A stretch of DNA of 64,000 bases from assembly GCA_000708835.1 (NCBI GenBank), contig DF237296.1, forward strand, positions 25,778 through 89,777, in the 5' to 3' direction. The stretch is from Klebsormidium nitens. Lineage: Eukaryota > Plantae > Klebsormidiophyceae. Below, piece after piece: positions 5,764-63,170 of the stretch (position 1 is its first letter; each line of letters begins with the position of its first letter). Both the position numbers and the translations under genes were made by a program. The notes beneath the pieces are model-generated. The model did not search any database. It saw nothing but the letters and a program-made list of their open reading frames with translations, and had not been told where the DNA came from.

Positions 5764-6833
5764 GGCTAATACTATTATTTTTCTTGAGTTTCATATCAAA
5801 TTTCCCCCGAGGACATGTTTTAGCAATTTAAGTGTCAAACAACGGATACGGAAACGCCCCGTTGAGTTGAACACTCAAATACTTGAACGGAATTGTCACA
5901 GTCTCTTCCGGGCACACCCTAAAAAGTAGTTTCCTCTAACCCCAGCGTGGAATCACAGGCTGGCCGGTCAGTCTTGACTCTTGAACCAGCAAAGTTCCCA
6001 CTCGTCTCCAAAATCTGCTAGTGTTGGTGCTAGTTACACTGAAGTCTGAATCCCACGTCTTTTCTGCCATCATCGGTGATGCTGGAGTGGTGCAATCCCT
6101 ACAATCCTGGCCATTTAGAAGCTGAACTCAAGAGCAGAAGAATCCTACATTGTGACGACCAGGTAGCTGGAGACACCGAACACAAAATGAAGCAGACTTT
6201 GACCACCTTTTAGCAGCAGCGGTAACGCTGTGGTCAACACCTTCGGCAATCAGGTAAGGAACTTTCCCTGAACTTTCCCCTTCACGTTGCTCTTCTCCAG
6301 AAGTTGCTTTAGTTGCTTTGGTTGCTATATGTCCCCAGGCTTTGAGGTTGTACCATTTGTTCATGGTTCGCAACAGCACAACTTCCGCTCCGTGTTGATC
6401 GCTCCATCGATTACAGTACATACAGACAGTCAGTACAATCCCTCAAGAATTTCAAACTCCTGAATGTTTTGAATTGCTTGTTGGGAGAATACCTTTGGTG
6501 GTGGTGGTTGCTTGAGGTTGGAAGGCCAGTATGCCCCTGTATGCTTGAAAACTGATGGTCAATGTGGTTGCCAACCGATTTTAGATCGACTCCTCCTGAA
6601 GCCAGTCTCCTCAATGCTGGTTCAAGATAAAAAGAGTCGAATTTGAACGGGGAATCTTATTGCAGTACATCTATCGAGTTGACTTGATGGAACCTTCTTT
6701 TTCCACAGAAGTCCTACTTGAAAAGATTCTAGTCAATAAAAGAGTTCTTGATATTTCTCCTATAGCTGCGGGAGAATCTCTATCATTGATAATGCCTCTC
6801 TAACACTCTCCCTTGTCTCCAGGTTTCGCAGCC

Positions 6834-9800
6834 ATGGCTCTCTGCGTCAGCCAAGCCTTTGGGCCAGTAACTGCTGGGTTAAGTGCGGGTTACGCCTCTA
6901 ACCCCAGTGACAAACGACAGCCCCTTCTGCCCCCTTCCCACTTCTGCCACCACCTGTCCTCTCTTGTTAGACGTAACCGCTGTCTAAGCCTTCAAACCCC
7001 TTCTGGGACTGGGCACAATAGGAGATGGAATCAAAGGCGCTTATACATTAGTAAAGTTCAGTGTTCTGCGCAAGATGAGGGGGGCGAGTTTGGCAGCGAA
7101 GCGGCCCCCCAAGAGGGATGGGAACGAGATGCGGCGGCCGCGCGCGTAGCAGAACTGGCGGAGAAAGCAGGGGCGGCCGGGGTGGGGCGTCGGAAGCTCA
7201 GCTTCAAAGCGGTGACTGCTGCAGCCGAGGGCGTTAAAGGGGGGGGTGGAGATGGCAGCGCTGAAGGTGCTCCGGAAACGAGGGGTGTTGGAAGGGGCGA
7301 ACGGCCCGCCGTTCGGGAGACGTCTTCTGAGGGCAGAAGTGATATTGCAGACGGAGGGTTTGGCAAGGAATCTCAGAGGGGGGGCAATGACTTTGGTGAG
7401 AGGTTGGTGCAGAGACCTAGGGCCAAAGACGAAGAGGGGTTTGGTGGGGGCTTAAGAAGACGACAGGAGCGATCGCCAGTTAGCGGCACTGGGTTGGATG
7501 CTCGCAAGGGGCCATGGGTTAGGGGAGGCGCGTCAACTGAAGAGCCTCCCAGGAGCAGTGGCGATGACTTCTTCAGGGATGTCGACAACGGAATGGAAGC
7601 TCGATCGAGGGGAGGCTATGGTGACCGAGAAAGCGACGGGTTTGCACGAGAGGGTGCGTTTAGGGAGCGCTTTGACGAACTTGGGTTTAGATCCAACCGG
7701 GATTCTAACCGAGAACGTAACTTTGAGCGTTATGAGGATCAGGACAACTTCGAGGGCAGGCGGGAGGATCGACGTTCCTTTCAGGGGGGTGCCAGAGGTG
7801 CCCGAAATAGTGGGTGGGAAGAGGAAGGTAATGATTTTGACAGGGGAGAAACGGATTACGGCTCCGAGAGTAGCCGAAATGTGTGGCGCCGTGACGTGGG
7901 GGTGGTGGATAATGGTGGAGACTTTAGGCCCCCTCCGCCAAAGCCGGTGTGGCGAAACCAAAAAGGGGGGGAAGACATTCTGGGAACCAAGGCGTTGGTT
8001 GCTCGAGAACGCGCGGAAGCGGACGGCGAATTGGGGGGGAGAAGAGCACAAGAAGACTGGGCCGATCGACCCCCCCGGAACGGAAGGGGACGCGGGGGTG
8101 ACCCGAGGGGGGCTCCGTTTAGGAGGGACCGCATGGGGGTGAGAGCTTGGAATAAGCGGGACGATGCTCCTGGATCGGAGTGGGGGGGTGCACCTTCTAG
8201 AAGCCAAGGGCGCAGGGGGGGCGGTTTTGGGGGGGGATCAGACGAGTGGGAAAATGAAGCTCGGGGGGGGGAGCTGGGAAGTGACGAAGAAGGGGGAGGG
8301 GAGATCAGCAGTTGGGGCCCGAGAGGGAACACTAAGAAGGTCGGCGTTAGAGGGAGTGTCTCAGGTGCCGCGAAGGGAAGCTTTAGCCGGGCCCCCGAGG
8401 GGCGCGTTGGGAGACGATCTGAAGAGGCGGGAGCGGGTTTCTCGCGAACTTTTAACGCTCCGGGGGGTCCGAGAAGCGGAGACAGGTTTAGACGGAGTGA
8501 GAGGGGAGACGCGGTTCCAACTAGAGACGAGTGGTCGCGGCCCGAGCCTGTCCAGAGACGGTCCGAACCCCCCCGTGGATTTTCGGACGCCTCTCGGTTT
8601 TCGTCCGAATCCCCTCTGAATCCGCCGGATTCTGGGCGGAATCCGTCCGGATCCGCTCGGGACACGGGCCGGCGACCGTCCGAAAGCGCTTGGAGGAGTC
8701 CTTTCGCGGCCAACGGCGCGGACCAAACTTTTGTCCGCAGAACGAGAGACGGGGGACGCGAGTTTGGTTATAACGACTACCCGGCTCCCGACGGAGAAGA
8801 GAGAACCTCTCTGTCCGCAGAGGAGAAGAAGGACCGCCGAAAGATGAAGCAAGTCAAGTTGGAAGGGCCTGGGTGTTACGGTTGCGGCGCGAGGCTACAA
8901 GTGAGCTACCCGGGGGGGCCAGGTTATCTGCGGCCCGATGTATACGAGCTGGTGAGGCGTTCGCTTATGAATCTTCAGTCTTCAGTTTGACTCCGAAATG
9001 GATTGGGTAATGGTTGGAAGCGCAGCGCTTTTTGGTGCTACCGCCGTGTCGAGTCTCCGTTTTAATCTGCATTTGTGGGAGACCAGGTTGTCTGCGGTCG
9101 GATGTATACGAGTTGGTGAGGCGTTCTCTTACAGCCGTCCGGATCTGATTGCCGGTTTGCTGTCCCCGACTGACCCAAATTTTGAAAAGTTTCTGAGCCG
9201 GCTGATAAGAGATTCCGTGGCTAACCGTACAAGATTGTGACGTCTGGTCAGACCATAGCTGGAATCTATCTAGATCTATGCTCTGCGAGGTTGGAACGTC
9301 CAACTTTGGTCCGACTCTGTTTGATCGATTGGTAGTGTTCAAGTCGATTGCAGAGACCTCTATAAATGCATACGATGAGAACAGCTTCGAGCGTCTAGGT
9401 TGATCGAAAACGCTGACTGATGGTCCTCGAAAGTGGGTCGGCAGAGCTCGCAACCTGAGTCCTCTTACGTAAAGTTCTGTCGTATTATGAAGCTGATGAG
9501 GAGCTTGATAATCCAGGAGCTTTTCTGTCGCTTAGTTGCTCTGGTCGTAAACGTCGAACCGAGAACGTTTTGCCAAATGGCTGGGCAGCGACTGATTGCA
9601 GTGCTCGCGCTGAGACGCTTTGATGCTATTGTTGCGTGATCGCCTCAAAAAATGAACAGACCCAGAATCACGAAGTCCTAGGAACCGTGCGCACGCGTCT
9701 ACCAATCGACACTAGCAGACTCTCAGACCAGAAATCCGTGAATATGCAGAAGCGCACGCACCGACAACTCGGAGAAACGCTCTGCGGGCGATGCACGGAG

Positions 9801-12800
9801 TTGGCGCACGGGAAGATGGTGCCAGCTGTCGGCGGCAACGGCGGGCACGGCAGCGGGGGGCAGCAAGAGGGCTACGTCATGGCGGAAGATTTGCGGGAGC
9901 AGCTGAAGCCGCTCAAGCTGAACAAGGTCTTGGTGGTCAAACTGGTGAGGTCTTGAAGTCTGGGTTTAAATTCTTAAACTTTTAGACACCTTCGCGGTTG
10001 GGGGATTGCTTAGTTTTGAAGTTAAACTTTAGACACCTTCACGGTTGGGGGGTTGCTTAGTTTTGAAGGTTATGGAAAGGTTCTCGAAACTTGCAAGAGT
10101 TCAAAATCGAGGTCAGCAGGAGAGGTACATCATGGCGGGAAATCTGCGGGAGCAATTGAAGCCGCTCGAGCTGAACAACCCGTGGTCAAACTGGTGAGAT
10201 GCACAACCCCTACTGTGATTCTCGAAAAGGTCTTGTGAGATACGTTCTTTCCTGGTTCTTAATCCTGAATTGGGGGAAGGACGACGGGTCACGTGAGAGC
10301 CCAGACACAATGGAAGCCGCTCAGGCTGAACAAAGTCCTCGTTGTCAGAGTGGTGGGTTAACGAAACCTTGATTTGAACGCTTTTCTAGACCTTAAGGTT
10401 CGAGGCTTCTAAATCCTCGATTGAAGAAAAGGAGGAGGGCTCCGTTCTGGCGAAAACGCCACGGAAAAAATGAAGTCGCTCAAACATGTAAAAGTAGGAT
10501 AACCTAATATCAAGTCTGCTAAACACTGGCACAGCTACTGGTTGGCGCAGCTACTGAATTACGTTAGTGGCTGAAACAATAGGTTAAATTTGGACATCGA
10601 AATGGCGTGTTTCCGGCGTCTGATCCTCGCATCAACCCGGATTTGAAAGGCCTCTTTTGGGCGGTACAGGTTGAAATCATGGACTTCAAGGGATGCTTCC
10701 TGTTCAACGTTGGCGACCTTGTTGGCGCTCATTCTGTTGAAAGCAGAAGTTCTGCTTGGAGAAGGCACGAAGTAATCCATCTCGAACATAGGCGTCAAAG
10801 CCGATCATAAGGCTTTGTTTGTTCGCAGTATAGGTCGACAGTGCGGGCTTAACGGGAGCTTTTTCGTCCAAGGTTCGCTCTAACCCGATCATTCTGGTGG
10901 GCTTGAATGTCAGCTTCACATAAGACCTCCAGGACTCGCATTCTTGCCCTAACTCCAGAGTCCCACTTTTGACGCCGCTTTATGATCGTTTAGGCGGACT
11001 TCATCGGGACCTTCCTGTCCAAGGGGTTGGCGCGATCTGGTTGGCGCTAACCCGATTCTTTTACACACGTAATTGACATGCTCATAAAGAGTCAAGAGGC
11101 AAGCCAAAAAGCGTAATGTCTGTGTCTAACCACCGCGTTAACCCTGATTTTCTCCACGGTGCAGGTCGACATTGCGGACTTTAATGGGAGCTTCCTTTCC
11201 AAGGTTCGCGACCTGGTTGGCTCTAACCCGATCATTTTGGTGGGCACGAAAGTCGACCTCCTTCCGGCGGACACCGACTTGGAGGCGGTCGCAGACTGGG
11301 TGTGGGAGGCGACCGTGCGAAAGAAGCTGAAGCCCATCAGCCTACATGTGGTGAGTCTGCTCTATCACAAAAACCCTTAGTCTGCAGTCCTTCAAGTGGG
11401 CATGCATCTGGAGGTTTCCCATTTAGCCGGACGTGCGAGTTGGGCCCTGCTGAGACAAACGCATGGCTTTTTGTGTTTTTCTGCTCATTAGCGTGCATTT
11501 GGTGAGTCTGTTCTGAATTTCCGTGTCGAATCTTTGAAGTCCTGGATCTCTCCTGTTACCTGGACCGTTGTTAGAACCCCTTTGGGGGTTCTTTGGACAT
11601 CGAAGGGTTACTTTTGAAAGAGAGGCACCGATCTGAAGTCGTTCTAGACTTGGTTAGGGAGGCGACCGTGCGAAAGAAGCTCAAGGCCATTACCATGCAT
11701 CTGGTAAGTATGCGAGCAAGCTTTCTTCGCTTGGAAGTTTTTACGTCCTTCATCTGTTGGTTTGAGAGGTGACGACTGGTCTGAGAGGTGACGAATGCAA
11801 TAAGCTCAGCACTTGGTAAGATTCATGCGGATGAAAGCGCTCGATACAATAGGGTCATCTGATTGCGGTCGCCCGCTTCGTGTAACCCTTCGCGTTCCGA
11901 CTTTCTTTATACTATCTTTATCATGAGCAGAGATTTGACTCTCTATTTCTCCACAGATCTCGTCTTTGACCGGCGCGGGCCTTCCATCATTGGCCGCTAA
12001 CATCCAAAGAGAACGGCAGGGCCGTGACGTGTACGTGCTCGGAGCAGCGAACGTGGGGAAGTCGGCCTTCATCAATGCGTTACTAGGTGAGCTTTCGTTC
12101 AGTTTTCCGAAGTGTTAAGTCCGTACTTCATATAAAGATGTAGATCATCAAATTCTAGTGTTCCAAGCTAAGTACACGTGCTCGGAGCAGCGAACGTGGG
12201 GAAGTCGGCCTTTATCAATGCGTTACTTGGTGAGCTCTTTCTGCCATTGAGTATGCTGCTGAAGAATCCAAGCTTTACATCGTTTTCGAATTCGGTCTGT
12301 CGTTCCTTGGAATGTATACGACCTCAGAGCGGCGAGCATGGGAAAGTCGGCCTTCATTAACGGGCTGCTTGGTAAGCTCTTTTTTTGATTTCCCATCATG
12401 CTTTTGAGGTCTCAACCTTGTCTTGGTCAGATTTCGATCGAGTCTGTCAGGTCCAGTGTTTCGCACAAATTGTACGATCTCTGGGCAGCAAACGTGGGCA
12501 GTATAGCCTTTATCAACGCGTTAACTCGGTAAGCTTTCGTTCCATGCTGCCCTTTCCCTTCTGCCGGTCGTTTTGGTGTACCCACAGTTTCTTAGGGTTC
12601 GCTTCAAAATTCTGGATTGTGAGAAGCCATAGTCTTGTCGTGCGATTCAGTGTGTGTCATGTCACTGTTTTTTTGCTCTTCCAGTATCTCAATCCTCTAC
12701 TTTCCGCTCCCATTTTCGCCTGTTGTTCTCGTGTCTCCTCTCATTCGAGGGTTCCGTTGACCCCTCCTCTTTTAAACTGCAAGAACGACGAACAAGGCGC

Positions 12801-15800
12801 CGTTGGAAGCGATCCACTGAATCGGCAACCGCCTGATCGCATGAATGAGGTCCTTCCCCACCCAAATTTCATCTCGTTTGACGTCACCCCGTTTATTTTT
12901 CCCTGCCTTTGCTATCGTTCAAATGATGATACGACACCCAACCGCTGCAGCCGCCTGATTGACTCAGCGGTGCCCCCAATTGCTTTAGAACTTCTGCTGT
13001 TAGCCCATATCAATGATTGCCGTGATCTTTCCATTTTCTTACAGCCGAACTGGCGACGCGCGATCCGGCTGCCGCTGCAGCCCGCAGAAAGCGCCCCACC
13101 GAATCGGCGATGCCCGGAACCACTTTGGGGCCTATTCCCATTAATGCGTTTTCCGGAGGGGGCGAGCTTTTCGATACACCGGGCATTCACTTGCATCACC
13201 GCCTGGCGTCTCTGCTAACCCCAGAGGAGTTGGTTATGCTCACCCCGAGAAGGCGGTTAAGGCCCGTGGCCCCGACCATTGGTACCGTTGATCAAACAAC
13301 GGCCCAAGGTAAGAAAATGAAGATCTCTTTTTTCGGGTTGATTTTGGGTGCGTTCCTCGCTGCAAATCAAAAAGGCCAATCGATAAATCCGGGCTTAGAT
13401 GGGTACGTAAAGGTGAGAAGGAGTTGGTATGCTATCCCCGAAAAGGGGTTAAGGCGTGGCCTCAGCGGTTGCTACAAATGATTGAACATCGGCCTGAGGT
13501 TAAAAGAAATTGGGGAGTCAGACTTTACGTCCAAGTCGGCGACCATTGGGTCGAATCTCTGTCTTCACGGTCGCCCGACATATTGGCCACAAAATCAAAC
13601 TTGTAACGTCACTGGGACGACTCAGGTCTCTGCCTATATCCAGTGGAAGCTACTTGGCAAGACGACTTTTCGAGAGCTTTGTACTCCTAATTTTCGAATC
13701 TAGAAGCAGCTGGATTTGAAGCCGACAACTGTGCAATGGTGGCTACTAATGTGCGCTGAAAGTTCGTGTCTCAAATTCTGGTTCCCATAACCCTGTCATA
13801 CCCTCTCCGGAATATGGAATCTCTTGCTCTCTTTATCACAGAGAATGGAGCAGCCCCCCACACCGAGATGACTGCCCCCGATTCAGAAAACGGCGCTTCC
13901 GAATCAAACGGTTCTAACCTTACCCCCGGTGACTTTGTGGTCCTTCGACCGCATCCCTCTTGCCCCCCCCAAGCCATCTTCATCGCCCAAGTTTCCGCTT
14001 CGGGGGTGTCGGAAACAGCCGGATCCGAGGGGGGTGGAACGCTTCTCGCCCGCCCCTGGATGCCGAAACCCGTTCGAAGGGGGCCGAAAATGGATCTCTG
14101 GAACGATCCGTGGGGGCGGAAATGGGTGCCGTACGAAGGGGGGATGTTCGAACTGGCGCCCGATGACGTCATCGCCAGCTGGCAGTCACGTGCCAAGGCC
14201 CCAGAGGAGGGCGTCCCGGTCCCCCCGTTGGTGGCGGCGCGCGTGGACGAACTGATCCGGGGGGGTAACTTGCCTGCTCCGGCGTACCCCCCCTGGGTGG
14301 ACGAGAGCGGAGAGATCGTGAGCGCAAAGGAATGGGGGGGTAAAGTGGGTGTTCTTGCAGGGGAGGGGTCCGCAAATATGGGCGATATTGTCCTGTCCAG
14401 GGGGGCAGTTTCGAGTGCGGAGAAGGGGGGATCGTTGCAGTCGGAGGGGATTGAGGGGACGACGTTCTTCTGGGGGGGAGTCGCGCGGGTCGACGTGCTT
14501 CAGGTGATCCTTGCTGCGTTTCCTCCCTTTTCACCGTAAATTGTGTTGCAGATTTTGGCATGCAATTTTTTTCGCAGCTGGTGTCTTATCCGGCTTGCAA
14601 AAACCCGGGCTCAACCGGCGAACGGGATGGCTCGTAACCCGATTTTAAGGTCGCCGGTTTGCCGTGACGTATTTGGGTTTGCAGCAACTCAGAAAGGGCT
14701 CAATTTGTCCACGCTTGTTTTCTGTTTCGTTTTTGAGCCAGCCTTCGCCCTTCTTTTGCCGTATCAGGTGCTGGGTAAGGGCGACCGAGACAGCGGCATT
14801 GCTGCCTTGCAAACGCCGAAAAGGTTGCTCATCGACGCCCTTTTTCAACAGCTCTTTGACCGTTTCTTGTGCAGGCACCGCCCGGCTTGCGCTTGTTCTT
14901 CTACGGCCCCCACACAGTGACGGTGCATGCCGTCGACTCCCAAGAAGCAGATGCGTTTTACGAGGTACGTCAATTCAACCCTTTGGCTCCAGAGATCCAT
15001 TACGTTTTTGCTTTTTAAAAAGTTTTGCCAATCAGACTCTGTCAATCTCAAGAAAGAACCTGGTGTGGCGATTTCAGGTGGAAATTCTGATCCCGATTTT
15101 GACGTTCTCCACACCCGTGACCTTTCCTAAGTGGGAAACGTTAACCACGGTCTTTTCGGTGCGTCCGCATCCGCAACCCACGCTTTTAATCACCACTTAA
15201 CCCCAAACATCCCTGGCCTTGTTTTCCAAGTGTCGGTCCATCGAATTGTCACACTTCATTGTAAACGTGATGGGCTGGTCTTCTGCCAACTTCGTTTTTC
15301 CGGTCTCCTGGAGAAAATCGCTGGTAGCTTCAGTCAACCAACATCCCGAAGTTGCGAAAGCTCGTATGTGCAGAAAGTTATTTGTTTATGGCTCGTATGT
15401 TTCTGTACAGGCAAATCTTTTCGAAAAGTTGACGCCTCCTTACAAGGACCGGGGGGCAAACTGGGACGGGCTCCCCTACAAGAAGGAGTGCAACCTCTAC
15501 TCCGAGGATGACGTCAGGTGAGTGACGTCGGCGAGGAGTCCCGTGACTTCACCACACTGCGCCACTCGGCGGTTGCTGATTTCAGGACTCCTTGAACGGA
15601 CGGGTCGGGGAAGAGGCCGATCCGCCAGATCAGCGCTTGAGCCTTCAACCGTGGCTGAAAACTCCGGCGACCTTTGAGCGGGAGCGCCTGCCAGAGTTTG
15701 TCAGATAGTCGCTCATGAACAAATTTGTAAGCTGGTTGAAGGGTTGAAGTCTAAGTCGGATAGACTGCGAGTAAGCGGTTTCAGTAGCAAACAACTCTTC

Positions 15801-58447: not shown

Positions 58448-60034
58448 CACGTGTCGCATTTACCGAAAGGCTTCATGGGAGTCGACTTGACGTACACGTA
58501 CAATTTCAGTTCCCCAGTTCTAGTTCCTAACAAAGAGTCAGGGTTGCGACCGAGTCAGAAACGGGCACGGTTAGTAAACGGGTTAGTGGGCTGTCCTGCT
58601 TGGACAAAGGTGATGCGAGGGTGAGGTTATCTACACCTAGGGGCGGGCTGCATGCGCATTGCGTGCGTTCCGCTGTGGTGGGGGCAATTGGTGTGTTAGC
58701 TTTGAAGCGAAACGGAATCCACCGGGCTAGTCTCGTCGTTGTGCTAGGCACAAGGAACTTAGTGGCAGGGTTTCAATTGCTCGTCGGTAGCTGAAATAAG
58801 CCGAGATGTCGACTGGCAAGCGGCCCGAACCAAAGGACAGCATTAAGAACAGCGAAGCTCGCGCACGTATTTTCGACGAGCAGAAACATAAGGATGACTT
58901 TACTGAGCAAGGGGGCGGATGATTTATATACCGGGGTACAAGTTGAGCTTGTACATATGCATCTTGGCCTGTACAAAGTGAAGCGGCGGTTCTAGGAAGT
59001 ACAATATGCACGCATAATCACCGTACTAATCTGACTGATCTTCAATGATCGGTCTGGCCTTTTCACGCTTGGAATTCTTCCCAATGTGTTTTAACTTTTG
59101 TTAGACGTTGCTCAGACTCGGAGGCTAGCGTTGATTCACTTACGACTCGATGGCAGCGCGAAGTAGCTCAATTCAGGCTGAGAGTTTGCCATGCATACAC
59201 AAGCCTTTGCAAGTACAGCAGTCGGAACGGACCTATGAACTTGAGTGAAAGCATTCGACACCGGCCTTGCAGTTCTTCATGTTTTTAACGCACTACTAAT
59301 TTCAAGTTTTCTAGCTTATCGAAGGGTGTTTTGATAGCTGTATACTTGTTTTAAGTTTGTATAAGTGTAAAATTGAGCAGGCAATATATATTTGCGTGAT
59401 ATCGACAAAGATTGGATGTGAAGTTGAATGTTTTCATCGTTGTATTTAGATGTTAGTCATCAAGGATATGGGTGAGTGAGACAACTGAGTATGAATTAGA
59501 CATATAAGTATGGATGTGTAAGTATGTGTAAAAGATCGTTTGTTCCTTTCCAAGCGCATTGATAGCTGATTGATGAGTGGCACTGTTTGAAATTATGTCA
59601 AGAGATGTGTTATACGGAGCAATAAGAAGTGTTGTGATTGGTAAAAGTATCGGAGGTTACTGGTGATTACATCTATAAGTTGATTTATAAGGTGGTGGAA
59701 ATTATGTGCAAAATGGAAGGTGTCTTTGCGAGGGAAAGAAAGCGAGACAATTTTTGTGAGTTGAATGAGCGAGAATACTGTGTGAGTCAAAAAAGCCCTA
59801 CCAGTTTATAAATAGGTCCAGACGACAGTCAACGTGATCAATGTTTTGTTACCTACGCGTGCTTCCCTAAACTCTTGGGCAATTTGCGGTGCAATAAACA
59901 TAGTTCATCTAGAAAACGAACGTATCTACACTTCCTCTCCGTTTTGTTACAAACGAATCTGCACAAGTTTTTTACCAACCACCAAATTACCAACGTTCAT
60001 ACACCAGTCGCTACAGCGCTATCATTCCTTCCAT

Positions 60035-62516
60035 TTAATGGTGGCCGGGCATCAGCTTGTCTTCAATCTTCTGGAGCAGGCTCTTCTTCTTGGGGACGGC
60101 GGCCGTGGTTCCGGTGTGAGTTCCAGCCAACCCAGTTCCGGTGGTGTGAGTTCCGGTCATTCCAGTTCCGGTGGTGTGGTGGGCACCTGTCAGACCGGTT
60201 CCGGTGGTGTGAGTTCCGGTCAAACCAGTTCTCTTGGTCGTCTTCTCATCGTCAGATGAGCTGTAACCGCTGCTGGAGCTAGACCCACCCCGGGCAAGCT
60301 TACCAGCTCCAAGACCGGTTCCGGCCGCAATTCCGGTCCCGGTGGCGGTGCTGGTGTGTGCGCCCAAATCCTTGTTCAGCACGTTGGGGTGGTGGCCGAG
60401 CTTCTCCCCGTGGAGACCGGTGGGCAAGCCCTTGCCAGCGTGGTGGAACTCGTTGACGGGATTCTCGCAGTAGCTGCGAAAGCCAAAAAAAGGTCGTCAG
60501 TAACGGAAGTGAAAGATTCAATAAGTCAAAGTGTCATGTAGAAGAAAGCGGTAGCCAAATTTCTCGTCCATTGTCTGTTTGTCCAATCGTCACTTGTCTG
60601 ACTGACGATTTTCTCCTGTCAGCTAAGGGTGGTTATATTTCTTATCAAAGCTATCTTGTTCACAATTCAGAATGTACATGTTCAGCCGGTAAAGAATACT
60701 GATGAAAAAATTCAGAATGTACATGTTCAGCCGGTAAAGAATACTGATGAAAAAAGTGCTGTAGATTGTCTGATACCAATACACTTGGTAAAATTTGCTG
60801 AAAGTGGGGTAGCTTGTCAGCTGGTAAGTTTTAAAGGGTGGCTGGTAACACATTTCAGACGAAATTTGGTCGAAAAGATACTTCGAGAGTTGTCAGCACG
60901 ACCGTGCAAGTATGGACACATCTTCCAATACACATCCTACTCTCCTGCTACAATTTGAGAGACGCATGCGAGCAGCATCAAAAGCTCACGAAACGTGTCA
61001 CAGAGAGTACCAACGGAGCGAAGTGGAGCTGATGTTACTCACTTGCCGGTGGGCACCTCGACCTTGCGGGTCACGGGCACCTCCTTGACGATGGGGACGG
61101 TGACAGTGGTCTCGACCTGCTCAGTGACCACGCGGGGGACAGTCTCCTTGCGTGGGACGGGCACATTGACAACAACTTTCTCAGTGTAGGGAACCTGCAC
61201 CTGCTCCTCAACAACCCTGGAAAGAAAACGAGAAAGAAGTGTCAACAACCATGACAATTGTCCTTTCACTTTACAGGCAAATTGTAAAATGATAAGTGTA
61301 TCTAACACTTCATGAACCGGAACAATTGTGCAAACTCCTGCATTCTGCTGGTAACACGTTCCATGGCTGCCACTGAAGCAATAAGTGCTTAGTTCTAAAA
61401 GTATATTCAAGAATCCTGAAACAAATGCTTAAAACAACTCGCATTTCTTCAAAGCAGATGGCAGCAGTTATTTGCAACCATTTCAACAAAAATGAACACC
61501 TCATGATGAGGAGCAACCCTGGTTAACTGTAAGGTGACCCACCTGTGCCTGGTCTCAGTGCGGGTCTTAGGGATCTCCTTGACGTGGGGAACCATGTCCA
61601 CACGCTCAACCTCCTCCATAACCACCTTGGTCTTGGGGACCAGGACAGTCTCGGTGCGCTCATCCAGGCGCTTAACATAGTCGGTCTTGGTGACGGTCTT
61701 CATCTCAGGCACCTTCTCAATGACCTGGACCCGGGTCTCGAACTCCTTAGGCTGCAGAGGGAAAAGAGGAAATGCTGTCAGACCTTCCATTCCAAGGCCC
61801 AACCCATTTCTATCTCCACCCTCAAGACAGCTCTTACAGCTAAGGCCTCTTCTACTGACATGTACATGCAGCTCAAAAGCCAACTGTCCCCAAGTGCAAA
61901 CCCAGGAGCATTTTGCTACGCGCGTTCTTAAGTGTGCTCATGTACCTTGTCAATCTTAGGGCACCAGAGTGGTAAACAGCTACAAAACCTCCTGACACCT
62001 GTGCAACTGTGCGACTCTGACAACCCTAGGCGACGACCATGAAATTAGCAGTGCCACCTCTGAGGACCGCCAGCTGGAACACTAGACTTGCAAACTATGC
62101 CACAAAGCCAAGTTTCTGGTCAAGAGCTGCCTGCCATGTTTGCTCACCAGGGTCGAGTCGTTAGGGTTGGGGCAGTACGCAGGGCCCTGTCCGGTGGTCT
62201 CGGAGCGGATCCCAGTCACACCCTGCAGTGCCTCCCGGTCATACTGCTCATCGCGCATCATCCGGCCGGCGCCGGCAGCGACACCGGTGCCCATGTGGTG
62301 CTGCCCGGTGAGCCCAGTTCCGGTCATGCCGGTGGCGCGAGTGCCAGTGAGCCCGGCAGCGGTCCCGGTGGATCCGTGCTTCATCTCCTCGCGGTCAGCA
62401 AAGTTGCCGGCAGCGCGACCGACAGCAGAGGTGGGGCCAGTGCGGTTCTCAATGGCCTCGGCGGCGCGGCCAGCGGCGCTGTTGGGAGCTCCTGCGCGGT
62501 TCTGGTTGAAAGCCAT
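60035..62516 (-). CDS. Dehydrin-like (S-, Phi-, K-segment) protein with a central Val/Pro/charged articulin-like repeat domain, 4 exons, 396 aa
   Basis: Exons 62148-62516, 61543-61751, 61043-61216 and 60035-60473 are phase-consistent GT-AG, and the ATG has A at -3. The C-terminus reads LARGGSSSSSGYSSSDDE (S-segment), then TGTGLTG(A/T)H repeats, then KKKSLLQKIEDKLMPGHH* (K-segment-like). The middle reads ...EKVVVNVPVPRKETVPRVVTEQVETTVTVPIVKEVPVTRKVEVP... Confidence 0.88.
60664..60755. repeat. Exact 45-bp tandem duplication in intron 3 of the dehydrin-like gene
   Basis: aattcagaatgtacatgttcagccggtaaagaatactgatgaaaa starts at 60664 and again at 60709. Confidence 0.92.
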
Positions 62517-62732
62517 AGTTTTCGCTTGGTGGGCTGTTTCGATACGAGTTTCTGGGGGCAAAGAGTGTACTTTTTTGAAAGTGAGCAACTCTGTTTCTGA
62601 GGATTGTTGTTGGGGCTTGCTTGTGATTGTGATGAGCAATTGCTGTGGGGCCTGCTTCTTATCATACGGAACGCAGCTTTTGCAATTGCTCAAACAGACT
62701 GGGACTTCGCGATACGCAGGCCTAGCCGCCCT

Positions 62733-63170
62733 GACACGTCACAGAGGGCAATCTGCATGCAGGTCTGGAAACTGCTTGTCTGGCAGATTGTGGCGCAAGT
62801 TCTGCGCCATTTTCCAGACACGTGGTCGCCGCCAAGATTGCGTACATCGACACGTATGTGCCAACCTGCTTGCGGAGGTGCATGCAGTAACATGCAGCTG
62901 ACACGAAGCACAAGGTGGGCGAGTAAGAGACTGACAGCTCACTGCGGTGGTTTTCCCAATGTGCTGATTTGGAAGGGGCGACCCTGCAAGACTGGCGGCA
63001 ACCTTCGCTTTCGCAATCTCGTCGGGATTCGGCTGCAACAAGTGGGTCACTTCAGTAGGAGTTCCGAGTCAGGACCGTGACAGTCACGTGAAAGGAGTCA
63101 AGCCTTTCAATAGGTAGGTAGGTACCTACCTAGGACACTTGGATAGATGTTTGTATTCCTGCATGCAGAG
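62733..63170 (-). promoter_or_regulatory. ABRE (ACGTGTC x3) and RY-like (CATGCA x4) cluster upstream of the dehydrin-like gene
   Basis: GACACGT on the + strand at 62733, 62817 and 62849, a CACGTG G-box at ~63085, and CATGCA at ~62756, 62881, 62892 and 63162. All lie 0.2-0.65 kb upstream of the ATG at 62516. Confidence 0.55.

Follow-up and report, generated by a model that had tools for sequence, protein, structure and literature searches.

A conserved, probably ordered 28-residue-repeat domain in a dehydrin-type protein family of Klebsormidium nitens and bryophytes

A four-exon gene and its transcripts

We analysed a stretch of 64,000 nucleotides of the alga Klebsormidium nitens (contig DF237296.1, positions 25,778 to 89,777; hereafter the window), in which a gene on the minus strand at 60035-62516 encodes a protein of 396 amino acids (aa). 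The protein consists of a variable N-terminal region, a core of 129 aa and a tail that by its motifs is of dehydrin type. The core is probably an undescribed, conserved and ordered domain of 28-residue repeats that belongs to a dehydrin-type family.

The four exons (Table 1) join to 1191 nt, encoding the 396 aa and a stop codon, and all three introns have GT..AG boundaries. An earlier note on this DNA, made from the letters alone, had described a spliced product of 396 aa with three modules; the translation holds every motif that it quoted, and RNA contigs confirm the junctions. Contigs from two different studies (X6 record 19, 1826 nt; X12 record 9, 1927 nt) each cover the four exons with exactly the predicted junctions, and contigs of X1 and X2 have splice joints identical to this model. 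Since the transcript runs through all of them, exons 2-3 belong with exon 4 to a single gene, as the three-module product had presupposed. The depth of RNA reads over the introns was 10-100 times below that over the exons, and RNA word depth reached 6000-15000 in run X1, showing that the gene can be very highly expressed. The contig ends place the limits of the transcript at about 59742-59789 (3') and 63006-63024 (5'), with an untranslated region (UTR) at either end.

Table 1. Positions, in the window, of the gene's exons and UTRs and of the segments of its product
Feature	Position	Strand	Basis
5' UTR, long (about 490-510 nt)	62517-63024	-	X12, X2 and X1 contig ends, 6-24 nt past 63000; X6 ends at 62902
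Exon 1: start codon, aa 1-123; variable Gly/Thr/Ala-rich N-terminus, AYCPNPN at end	62148-62516	-	translation, RNA contigs
Conserved AYCPNPN motif closing exon 1	62160-62180	-	translation
Core of 129 aa, aa 125-253, KEFET...TGNYC, about 4.6 repeats of 28 residues; introns 2 and 3 inside	60467-61748	-	family alignment
Exon 2: aa 124-193; predicted hairpin arm 1 (repeats 1, 2 and half of 3)	61543-61751	-	RNA junctions, AlphaFold2
Exon 3: aa 193-251; predicted hairpin arm 2 (remainder of repeat 3, repeats 4 and 5)	61043-61216	-	RNA junctions, AlphaFold2
Exon 4: aa 251-396 and stop; dehydrin-type tail	60035-60473	-	PF00257 match, RNA junctions
Candidate exitron, 117 nt, in frame, within exon 4	60187-60303	-	joint in one contig of run X1
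S-segment: serine run then DDE, aa 310-327	60245-60298	-	translation
Phi-segment-like TGTG repeats, Thr/Gly/His-rich, aa 333-374	60104-60229	-	translation
K-segment variant, C-terminal, aa 379-396	60038-60091	-	translation, AlphaFold2 helix
3' UTR	59742-60034	-	contigs end at 59742-59789

A core of fixed length shared with mosses and liverworts

The modules differ in composition, with 20 Gly and 14 Thr in the N-terminal 110 aa, 33 Val, 18 Thr, 12 Pro, 23 Lys or Arg and 22 Asp or Glu in the core, and 28 Gly, 27 Thr and 11 His in the tail (134 aa); no signal peptide or hydrophobic stretch was found in the protein. A phmmer search with the tail led to P0002 (372 aa), which has the architecture of the window protein, and the family was gathered by searching with P0002 and then with the core of its Physcomitrium member. 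The protein collection contained no exact copy of the window protein, but about 100 relatives were obtained, and those with a species name come from K. nitens, Ceratodon purpureus, Physcomitrium patens, Marchantia paleacea, Riccia fluitans and Riccia sorocarpa; the P. patens member (A9TQL6 / XP_024372992) is annotated as "uncharacterized". No vascular plant was among the relatives, in searches that rely on shared 5-residue words and are not proof of absence. A profile search with the full-length alignment returned mostly low-complexity candidates, with no new named lineage among the matches listed.

Measured from KEFET to TGNYC, the core has 129 aa in 85 of the 92 family proteins and 185 aa (129 + 56) in the other seven. 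It is free of gaps in an alignment of 58 sequences, with a commonest-residue share of 0.6-0.88 per 10-residue block. The flanks are gap-rich, and the N-terminal region is poorly conserved apart from its last 20 or so residues. Algal and bryophyte cores share 55-66% identity without gaps, and the window core is 97% identical to the cores of P0008 and P0009. Against the mRNA of the closest ortholog (synonymous divergence, dS, about 0.3), the ratio of nonsynonymous to synonymous change (dN/dS) was lowest for the core (0.042), intermediate for the tail (0.081) and highest for the N-terminal part (0.20), a sign of strong purifying selection on the core. Two Cys are conserved in the window protein, the first of which is replaced by Ala in several mosses. 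An obligatory disulfide clasp between the two was considered and rejected, given this replacement and the position of the first Cys outside the confident part of the structural model.

Comparison of the core profile with itself revealed a period of 28 residues (z of 6.2 and 3.3 at offsets 28 and 56, relative to parity-preserving column shuffles), while offsets 12 and 7 gave z 0.7 and -1.5. The 56-aa insertion of the longer variant consists of two more copies of the 28-residue repeat. No Pfam family matches the core, a PDB sequence search with it found no related solved structure, and the best score of an ESM Atlas feature search (0.77) was within noise.

In a maximum-likelihood tree of 81 cores the mosses formed one group, made up of several paralog lines, and three clades corresponded to the liverworts, the 185-aa variant and the Klebsormidium type. 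The last of these (100/99 support) comprises the window protein, its relatives of 92-95% identity and a K. nitens paralog, KFL_002550070, which indicates that the gene is algal, as had been supposed, and the locus not a land-plant contaminant. Two introns, one before PKEFET and one between PTG and YCE, have the same positions in four genes: that of the window, KFL_002550070, A9TQL6 of P. patens and Mapa_000695 of M. paleacea. The middle intron was found only in Klebsormidium among these four genes. Besides the bounding introns, the window protein has the other hallmarks of the family, namely the 129-aa KEFET-TGNYC domain, the YCPNPN flank, a serine run after the domain and a basic C-terminal LL-x-x-I motif. 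The earlier note had described a dehydrin fused to a repeat core. A fusion peculiar to this alga is not supported: given the core tree and the shared positions of the bounding introns, the architecture is ancestral to Klebsormidium and bryophytes, mosses and liverworts having the same architecture, domain length and bounding introns.

Three further observations concern the family. The paralog KFL_002550070 (DF237204.1, L006:1501-4545) matches the window gene in its layout of four exons and in the intron at the modelled turn (described below), and it encodes two K-segments. The sister clade with the 185-aa core (P0046, P0048-P0052, P0109 and P0110; L001-L003, JGI metatranscriptomes 3300034396/97/62) lacks a serine run and has RRGLLGRLIG as a short C-terminus; a helix is predicted at the N-terminus (residues 9-33 of P0048). 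P0054 and P0108 form a long-branch pair nested in the mosses, with Cys instead of Val or Thr at many core positions and, in P0054, His-rich flanks; the pair may be a metal- or redox-adapted offshoot.

The dehydrin-type tail

Exon 4 alone matched the Pfam Dehydrin profile (PF00257) over positions 22-154 of 154 (E 7.8e-6, 26.9 bits). The K. nitens paralog KFL_002550070 (P0013) reached 36.5 bits, above the gathering cut-off of the family, and moss relatives scored 26.6, 17.7 or nothing. The tail contains a serine run with acidic residues, as in S-segments of the SKn type, and bryophyte relatives carry a canonical LHR-x-SSSSSSS-DDE S-segment in the equivalent place. The TGTG repeats that follow differ widely in length among relatives. 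The C-terminal K-segment variant agrees with the canonical EKKGIMDKIKEKLPG at 8 of 15 positions (manual count); several of the differences are conservative, and one Met has been inserted. In P0055, a full-length ortholog of 95% identity, AlphaFold2 predicted a helix at 382-390 (predicted local distance difference test, pLDDT, 82 for the block), and the helical hydrophobic moment of the variant is 0.38 versus 0.29 for the canonical segment. The variant is EKKGIMDKIKEKLPG-like and suited to an amphipathic helix, as judged by motif count, predicted helix and hydrophobic moment. These motifs make the tail one of dehydrin type, whose S-segment is canonical and whose C-terminal K-segment is a variant.

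The window protein resembles SKn dehydrins (late embryogenesis abundant group 2, PF00257) in its S-segment, in its Gly/Thr/His-rich filler, in a Lys-rich C-terminal segment with helix propensity that ends in PGHH, in being hydrophilic without a signal peptide, and in having a paralog above the Pfam cut-off. It differs from them in that one third of it is a conserved, probably ordered domain outside the Pfam model, in that its K-segment has an inserted Met (and is shortened to KKKxLLxRIxHH in mosses), and in scoring below the cut-off itself. Dehydrins have been described as disordered throughout and as lacking Cys and Trp (PMC10358736), whereas the window protein has two conserved Cys and 129 residues predicted to be ordered (pLDDT about 90).

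One contig of run X1 has a joint within exon 4 (depth 2550, side 27, this run only) that keeps the frame and excises 39 aa, including the complete S-segment, between boundaries of the form GTAAGC...ACAG. This candidate exitron would let the gene yield products with or without the S-segment. Among close relatives, S-bearing and S-less forms exist as separate genes; the S-less P0002, P0004 and P0005 were considered as splice isoforms of S-bearing relatives and rejected as such, since their sequences differ elsewhere too.

SK1 and SK2 dehydrins of K. nitens were reported in 2025, in a survey that applied a Dhn Decoder threshold and has GAQ85800.1 as SK2 (PMC11763121), and the K-segment quoted there for GAQ85800.1 is the C-terminus of P0013. 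The authors presented their report of algal dehydrins as the first, and their BLAST searches gave no strong link to bryophyte dehydrins (PMC11763121). Earlier reviews had called the data on algal dehydrins contradictory or negative. The earlier note's impression that the architecture was undescribed therefore holds in part: K. nitens dehydrins had been published, and that survey mentions neither the core nor a bryophyte link. We found no paper describing the core domain, nor the old streptophyte family that joins a 28-residue-repeat domain to an S/K tail described as such. Hints on expression come from the paralog kfl00255_0070, which is auxin-induced and a KnRAV target (PMC10272232), and from the Syntrichia homolog of LOC112281062, the strongest ultraviolet-responsive transcript, called uncharacterised (PMC8581813).

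Other features of the locus were noted beside these. Abscisic acid-responsive element (ABRE)-like and RY motifs occur at 62739-62891, inside the 5' UTR. In all, 62730-63170 contains three ABRE-like ACGTG[GT]C sites and the RY element CATGCA at four places, mostly within the roughly 500-nt 5' UTR, and this RY count equals the maximum among chunks of the same size in the window. Two of the sites, a CACGTG at 63085 and an RY at 63162, fall a short way upstream of where the contigs end. G-box and RY motifs are thus found near the transcription start, all of them consensus matches only. RY motifs have been tied to KnRAV and auxin-induced genes (PMC10272232). Intron 3 has a 45-bp unit in perfect tandem duplication (60665-60754). 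No tandem paralog was found within the 64-kb window, and a 1829-nt contig of run X12 that resembles the window gene in short patches only is probably the transcript of a paralog.

The predicted ribbon and its possible roles

AlphaFold2, run on the family alignment, folded the core of P0055 into two strands (129-191 and 195-260; block pLDDT 85-93, about 91 over the first strand) with disordered flanks, the N-terminal region and most of the tail having pLDDT below 50. For the 185-aa variant the modelled hairpin grew in proportion, its strands being 81-170 and 176-268 and its turn displaced by about 28 residues. A near-invariant RVVEE lies at the modelled turn, as does the middle intron in both Klebsormidium genes, leaving one exon per arm; codon 193, which the junction of exons 2 and 3 splits, encodes the first residue of the turn. 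When all registers were scanned for charge complementarity between the arms, the best sums of paired positions were i+j = 388 (and 386) in the 129-aa class and 348 (and 346) in the 185-aa class, and the top register was that of AlphaFold2 in both. Hydrophobicity did not discriminate between registers. In 71 unique cores, prolines occupy 15 alignment positions, all 15 of them odd, and the 10 distinct within-repeat positions are all of one parity (about 0.002 by chance), which is the expectation for a continuous strand with prolines in equivalent positions. The prolines may face outward and so hinder sideways growth of a sheet. The core is most likely one long, two-stranded antiparallel beta-ribbon of about 63 residues per arm, roughly 20 nm in length on this model. 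Fold searches (Foldseek against the PDB, an Atlas shape search and a wide VIA-align search) gave no meaningful match, the best Foldseek E (0.022) and the best Z (3.2) being at noise level. Lysenin, aerolysin and anthrax pores, phage tail knobs and HU/IHF arms were the only weak neighbours, each of them a long ribbon; they share with the model a two-stranded antiparallel ribbon, but are not related in sequence and are stabilised in oligomeric barrels or on DNA.

We favour, with a probability of about 0.58, the reading that the protein is a dehydrin-type protector of an old streptophyte family, in which a variable disordered N-terminus and a dehydrin-type tail flank a conserved ribbon rod. It would act as dehydrins do under water or cold stress, its C-terminal K-helix binding membranes and its S-segment working as a switch for phosphorylation and ion binding that alternative splicing might remove. 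A stiff and strongly charged rod whose length is fixed, rather than a fully flexible chain, would carry the protective arms. Such a rod would set spacing or permit ordered self-association, with prolines on the outer edges of the ribbon and with beta-branched residues and opposite charges that may join its strands.

Several results weigh against this reading. The hairpin rests on a shallow alignment, with an effective number of sequences (Neff) of about 10. The charge-register peaks did not rise significantly above a max-over-registers null (P 0.2 and P 0.8), and mutual information is dominated by phylogeny at this Neff, which makes its modal i+j of 388 among top pairs unreliable. The 56-aa insertion sits within the second arm, yet AlphaFold2 merely re-centred the turn, and because it does so the fold-back could stand in for pairing between molecules. 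On the side of the tail, the earlier note's dehydrin is supported by the S-segment, the K-segment variant and the PF00257 E value, but the score of the window gene stays below the gathering cut-off of 30.6 bits, and P0055 as a whole protein gave no match to PF00257. Compared by phmmer with 1.84 billion representatives, the tail matched no land-plant dehydrin; besides two members of the family, the sole match was a spurious bacterial protein rich in Thr and Gly. The dehydrin character of the tail thus depends on motifs and profile rather than on pairwise similarity. Finally, the conserved Cys pair is atypical for dehydrins, and its first Cys has been lost in some mosses.

The core may instead be a self-assembling unit, paired between molecules as an in-register antiparallel dimer or with a 28-residue stagger into filaments, sheets or a gel, and so form a stress-induced scaffold, close to what the earlier note had proposed and to what is assumed for alveolins and articulins; we regard this as unlikely. 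Because a symmetric antiparallel dimer has exactly the residue pairs of the hairpin, pairing within and between chains is indistinguishable here, by AlphaFold2 as by charge register. The re-centring of the turn with added repeats further suggests that pairing is not bound to specific repeats, the 28-shifted i+j = 360 ties with 372 as next best in charge complementarity after 386/388 (unweighted scan), and the pore and tail-knob hairpins among the weak structural neighbours occur within oligomers. AlphaFold-Multimer gives alveolin domains a twisted beta-ribbon that is formed with a partner (PMC12465100). Prolines of a single parity, if outward, would however stop a sheet from growing sideways, and a fixed domain length with a near-invariant RVVEE at the modelled turn suits a defined monomeric fold.

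The comparison with alveolins bears on this alternative directly, for the earlier note had likened the core to the articulins and alveolins. The core shares with alveolins, articulins and plateins a Val/Pro/charged composition and VPV-type motifs, and with alveolin domains an AlphaFold beta-ribbon, twisted in their case (PMC12465100), which is a likeness in their possible mode of action and no evidence of kinship. A language model gave a weak resemblance as well (IMCp cluster at rank 19, score 0.71). The likeness in composition and ribbon stands, whereas the proposed kinship does not: IMCp (PF12314) matched neither exon 2, exon 3 nor the whole P0002 core at E up to 10, and none of eight full-length family members at E up to 1. 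Alveolins and articulins are defined by 12-residue tandem repeats or EKIVEVP-type heptads (PMC4303705), unlike the period of 28 found here. Furthermore, the core is a single domain of fixed length and not an expandable array, its ribbon closes within one chain in the model, and the family lives in streptophytes and bears dehydrin tails. A bolder version, less likely again, sees in the core a new kind of rod or assembly unit that has converged on alveolins. As water is lost, ribbons of different molecules would pair, in register or one repeat out of step, and a soluble dehydrin-type protein would become an ordered filament or gel bracing membranes. Such a device against desiccation would go back to ancestral streptophytes and have been retained in Klebsormidium, mosses and liverworts, but lost or altered beyond recognition in vascular plants.

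Another alternative takes the core to be unfolded, either a PEVK-like elastic spacer or one of polyproline II and coil, with the hairpin an artefact of a Val-rich alternating repeat. The PEVK modules of titin, in which Pro, Glu, Val and Lys abound, are repeats of about 28 residues and form an extensible coil of variable length; the core recalls them in its repeat length and in its P/E/V/K composition. The charge register that did not reach significance, the covariation dominated by phylogeny and a turn placed at the midpoint irrespective of repeat number would fit as well. Disordered spacers, however, normally gain and lose residues, whereas the core has kept its length in 85 of 92 proteins, without gaps and at a dN/dS of 0.04, since the alga and the bryophytes split. 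In addition, one proline parity over the whole repeat fits a continuous strand, and pLDDT above 90 over 130 residues is unusual for a low-complexity coil; unlike the titin modules, the core is thus fixed in length, strongly conserved and confidently predicted as beta, and we consider an unfolded spacer quite improbable. Least credible is a flat ice-binding or surface-binding face with antifreeze or recrystallisation-inhibiting activity instead of a spacing or scaffold role. In its favour, one face is 15% Thr with local T-x-T patterns (TVTKT, TVTVP), the family occurs in freezing-tolerant organisms (Klebsormidium, mosses) and dehydrins are cited as cryoprotective (PMC10358736); against it, the Thr positions are neither strictly periodic nor invariant, both faces are heavily charged and no known ice-binding fold matches the structure.

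The 129-aa domain and its bounding introns provide a strong, alignable link between dehydrin-type proteins of Klebsormidium and uncharacterised proteins of mosses and liverworts, and the architecture therefore predates land plants. The 2025 motif survey had reported no sequence link between algae and bryophytes, and algal dehydrins had been disputed until then. Dehydrins are textbook examples of fully disordered proteins; an ordered-looking rod of about 20 nm, with a length that scales with repeat number, would, if true, add a structured element to dehydrin biology. The family offers a testable handle on cell protection in early land-adapted algae and in bryophytes.

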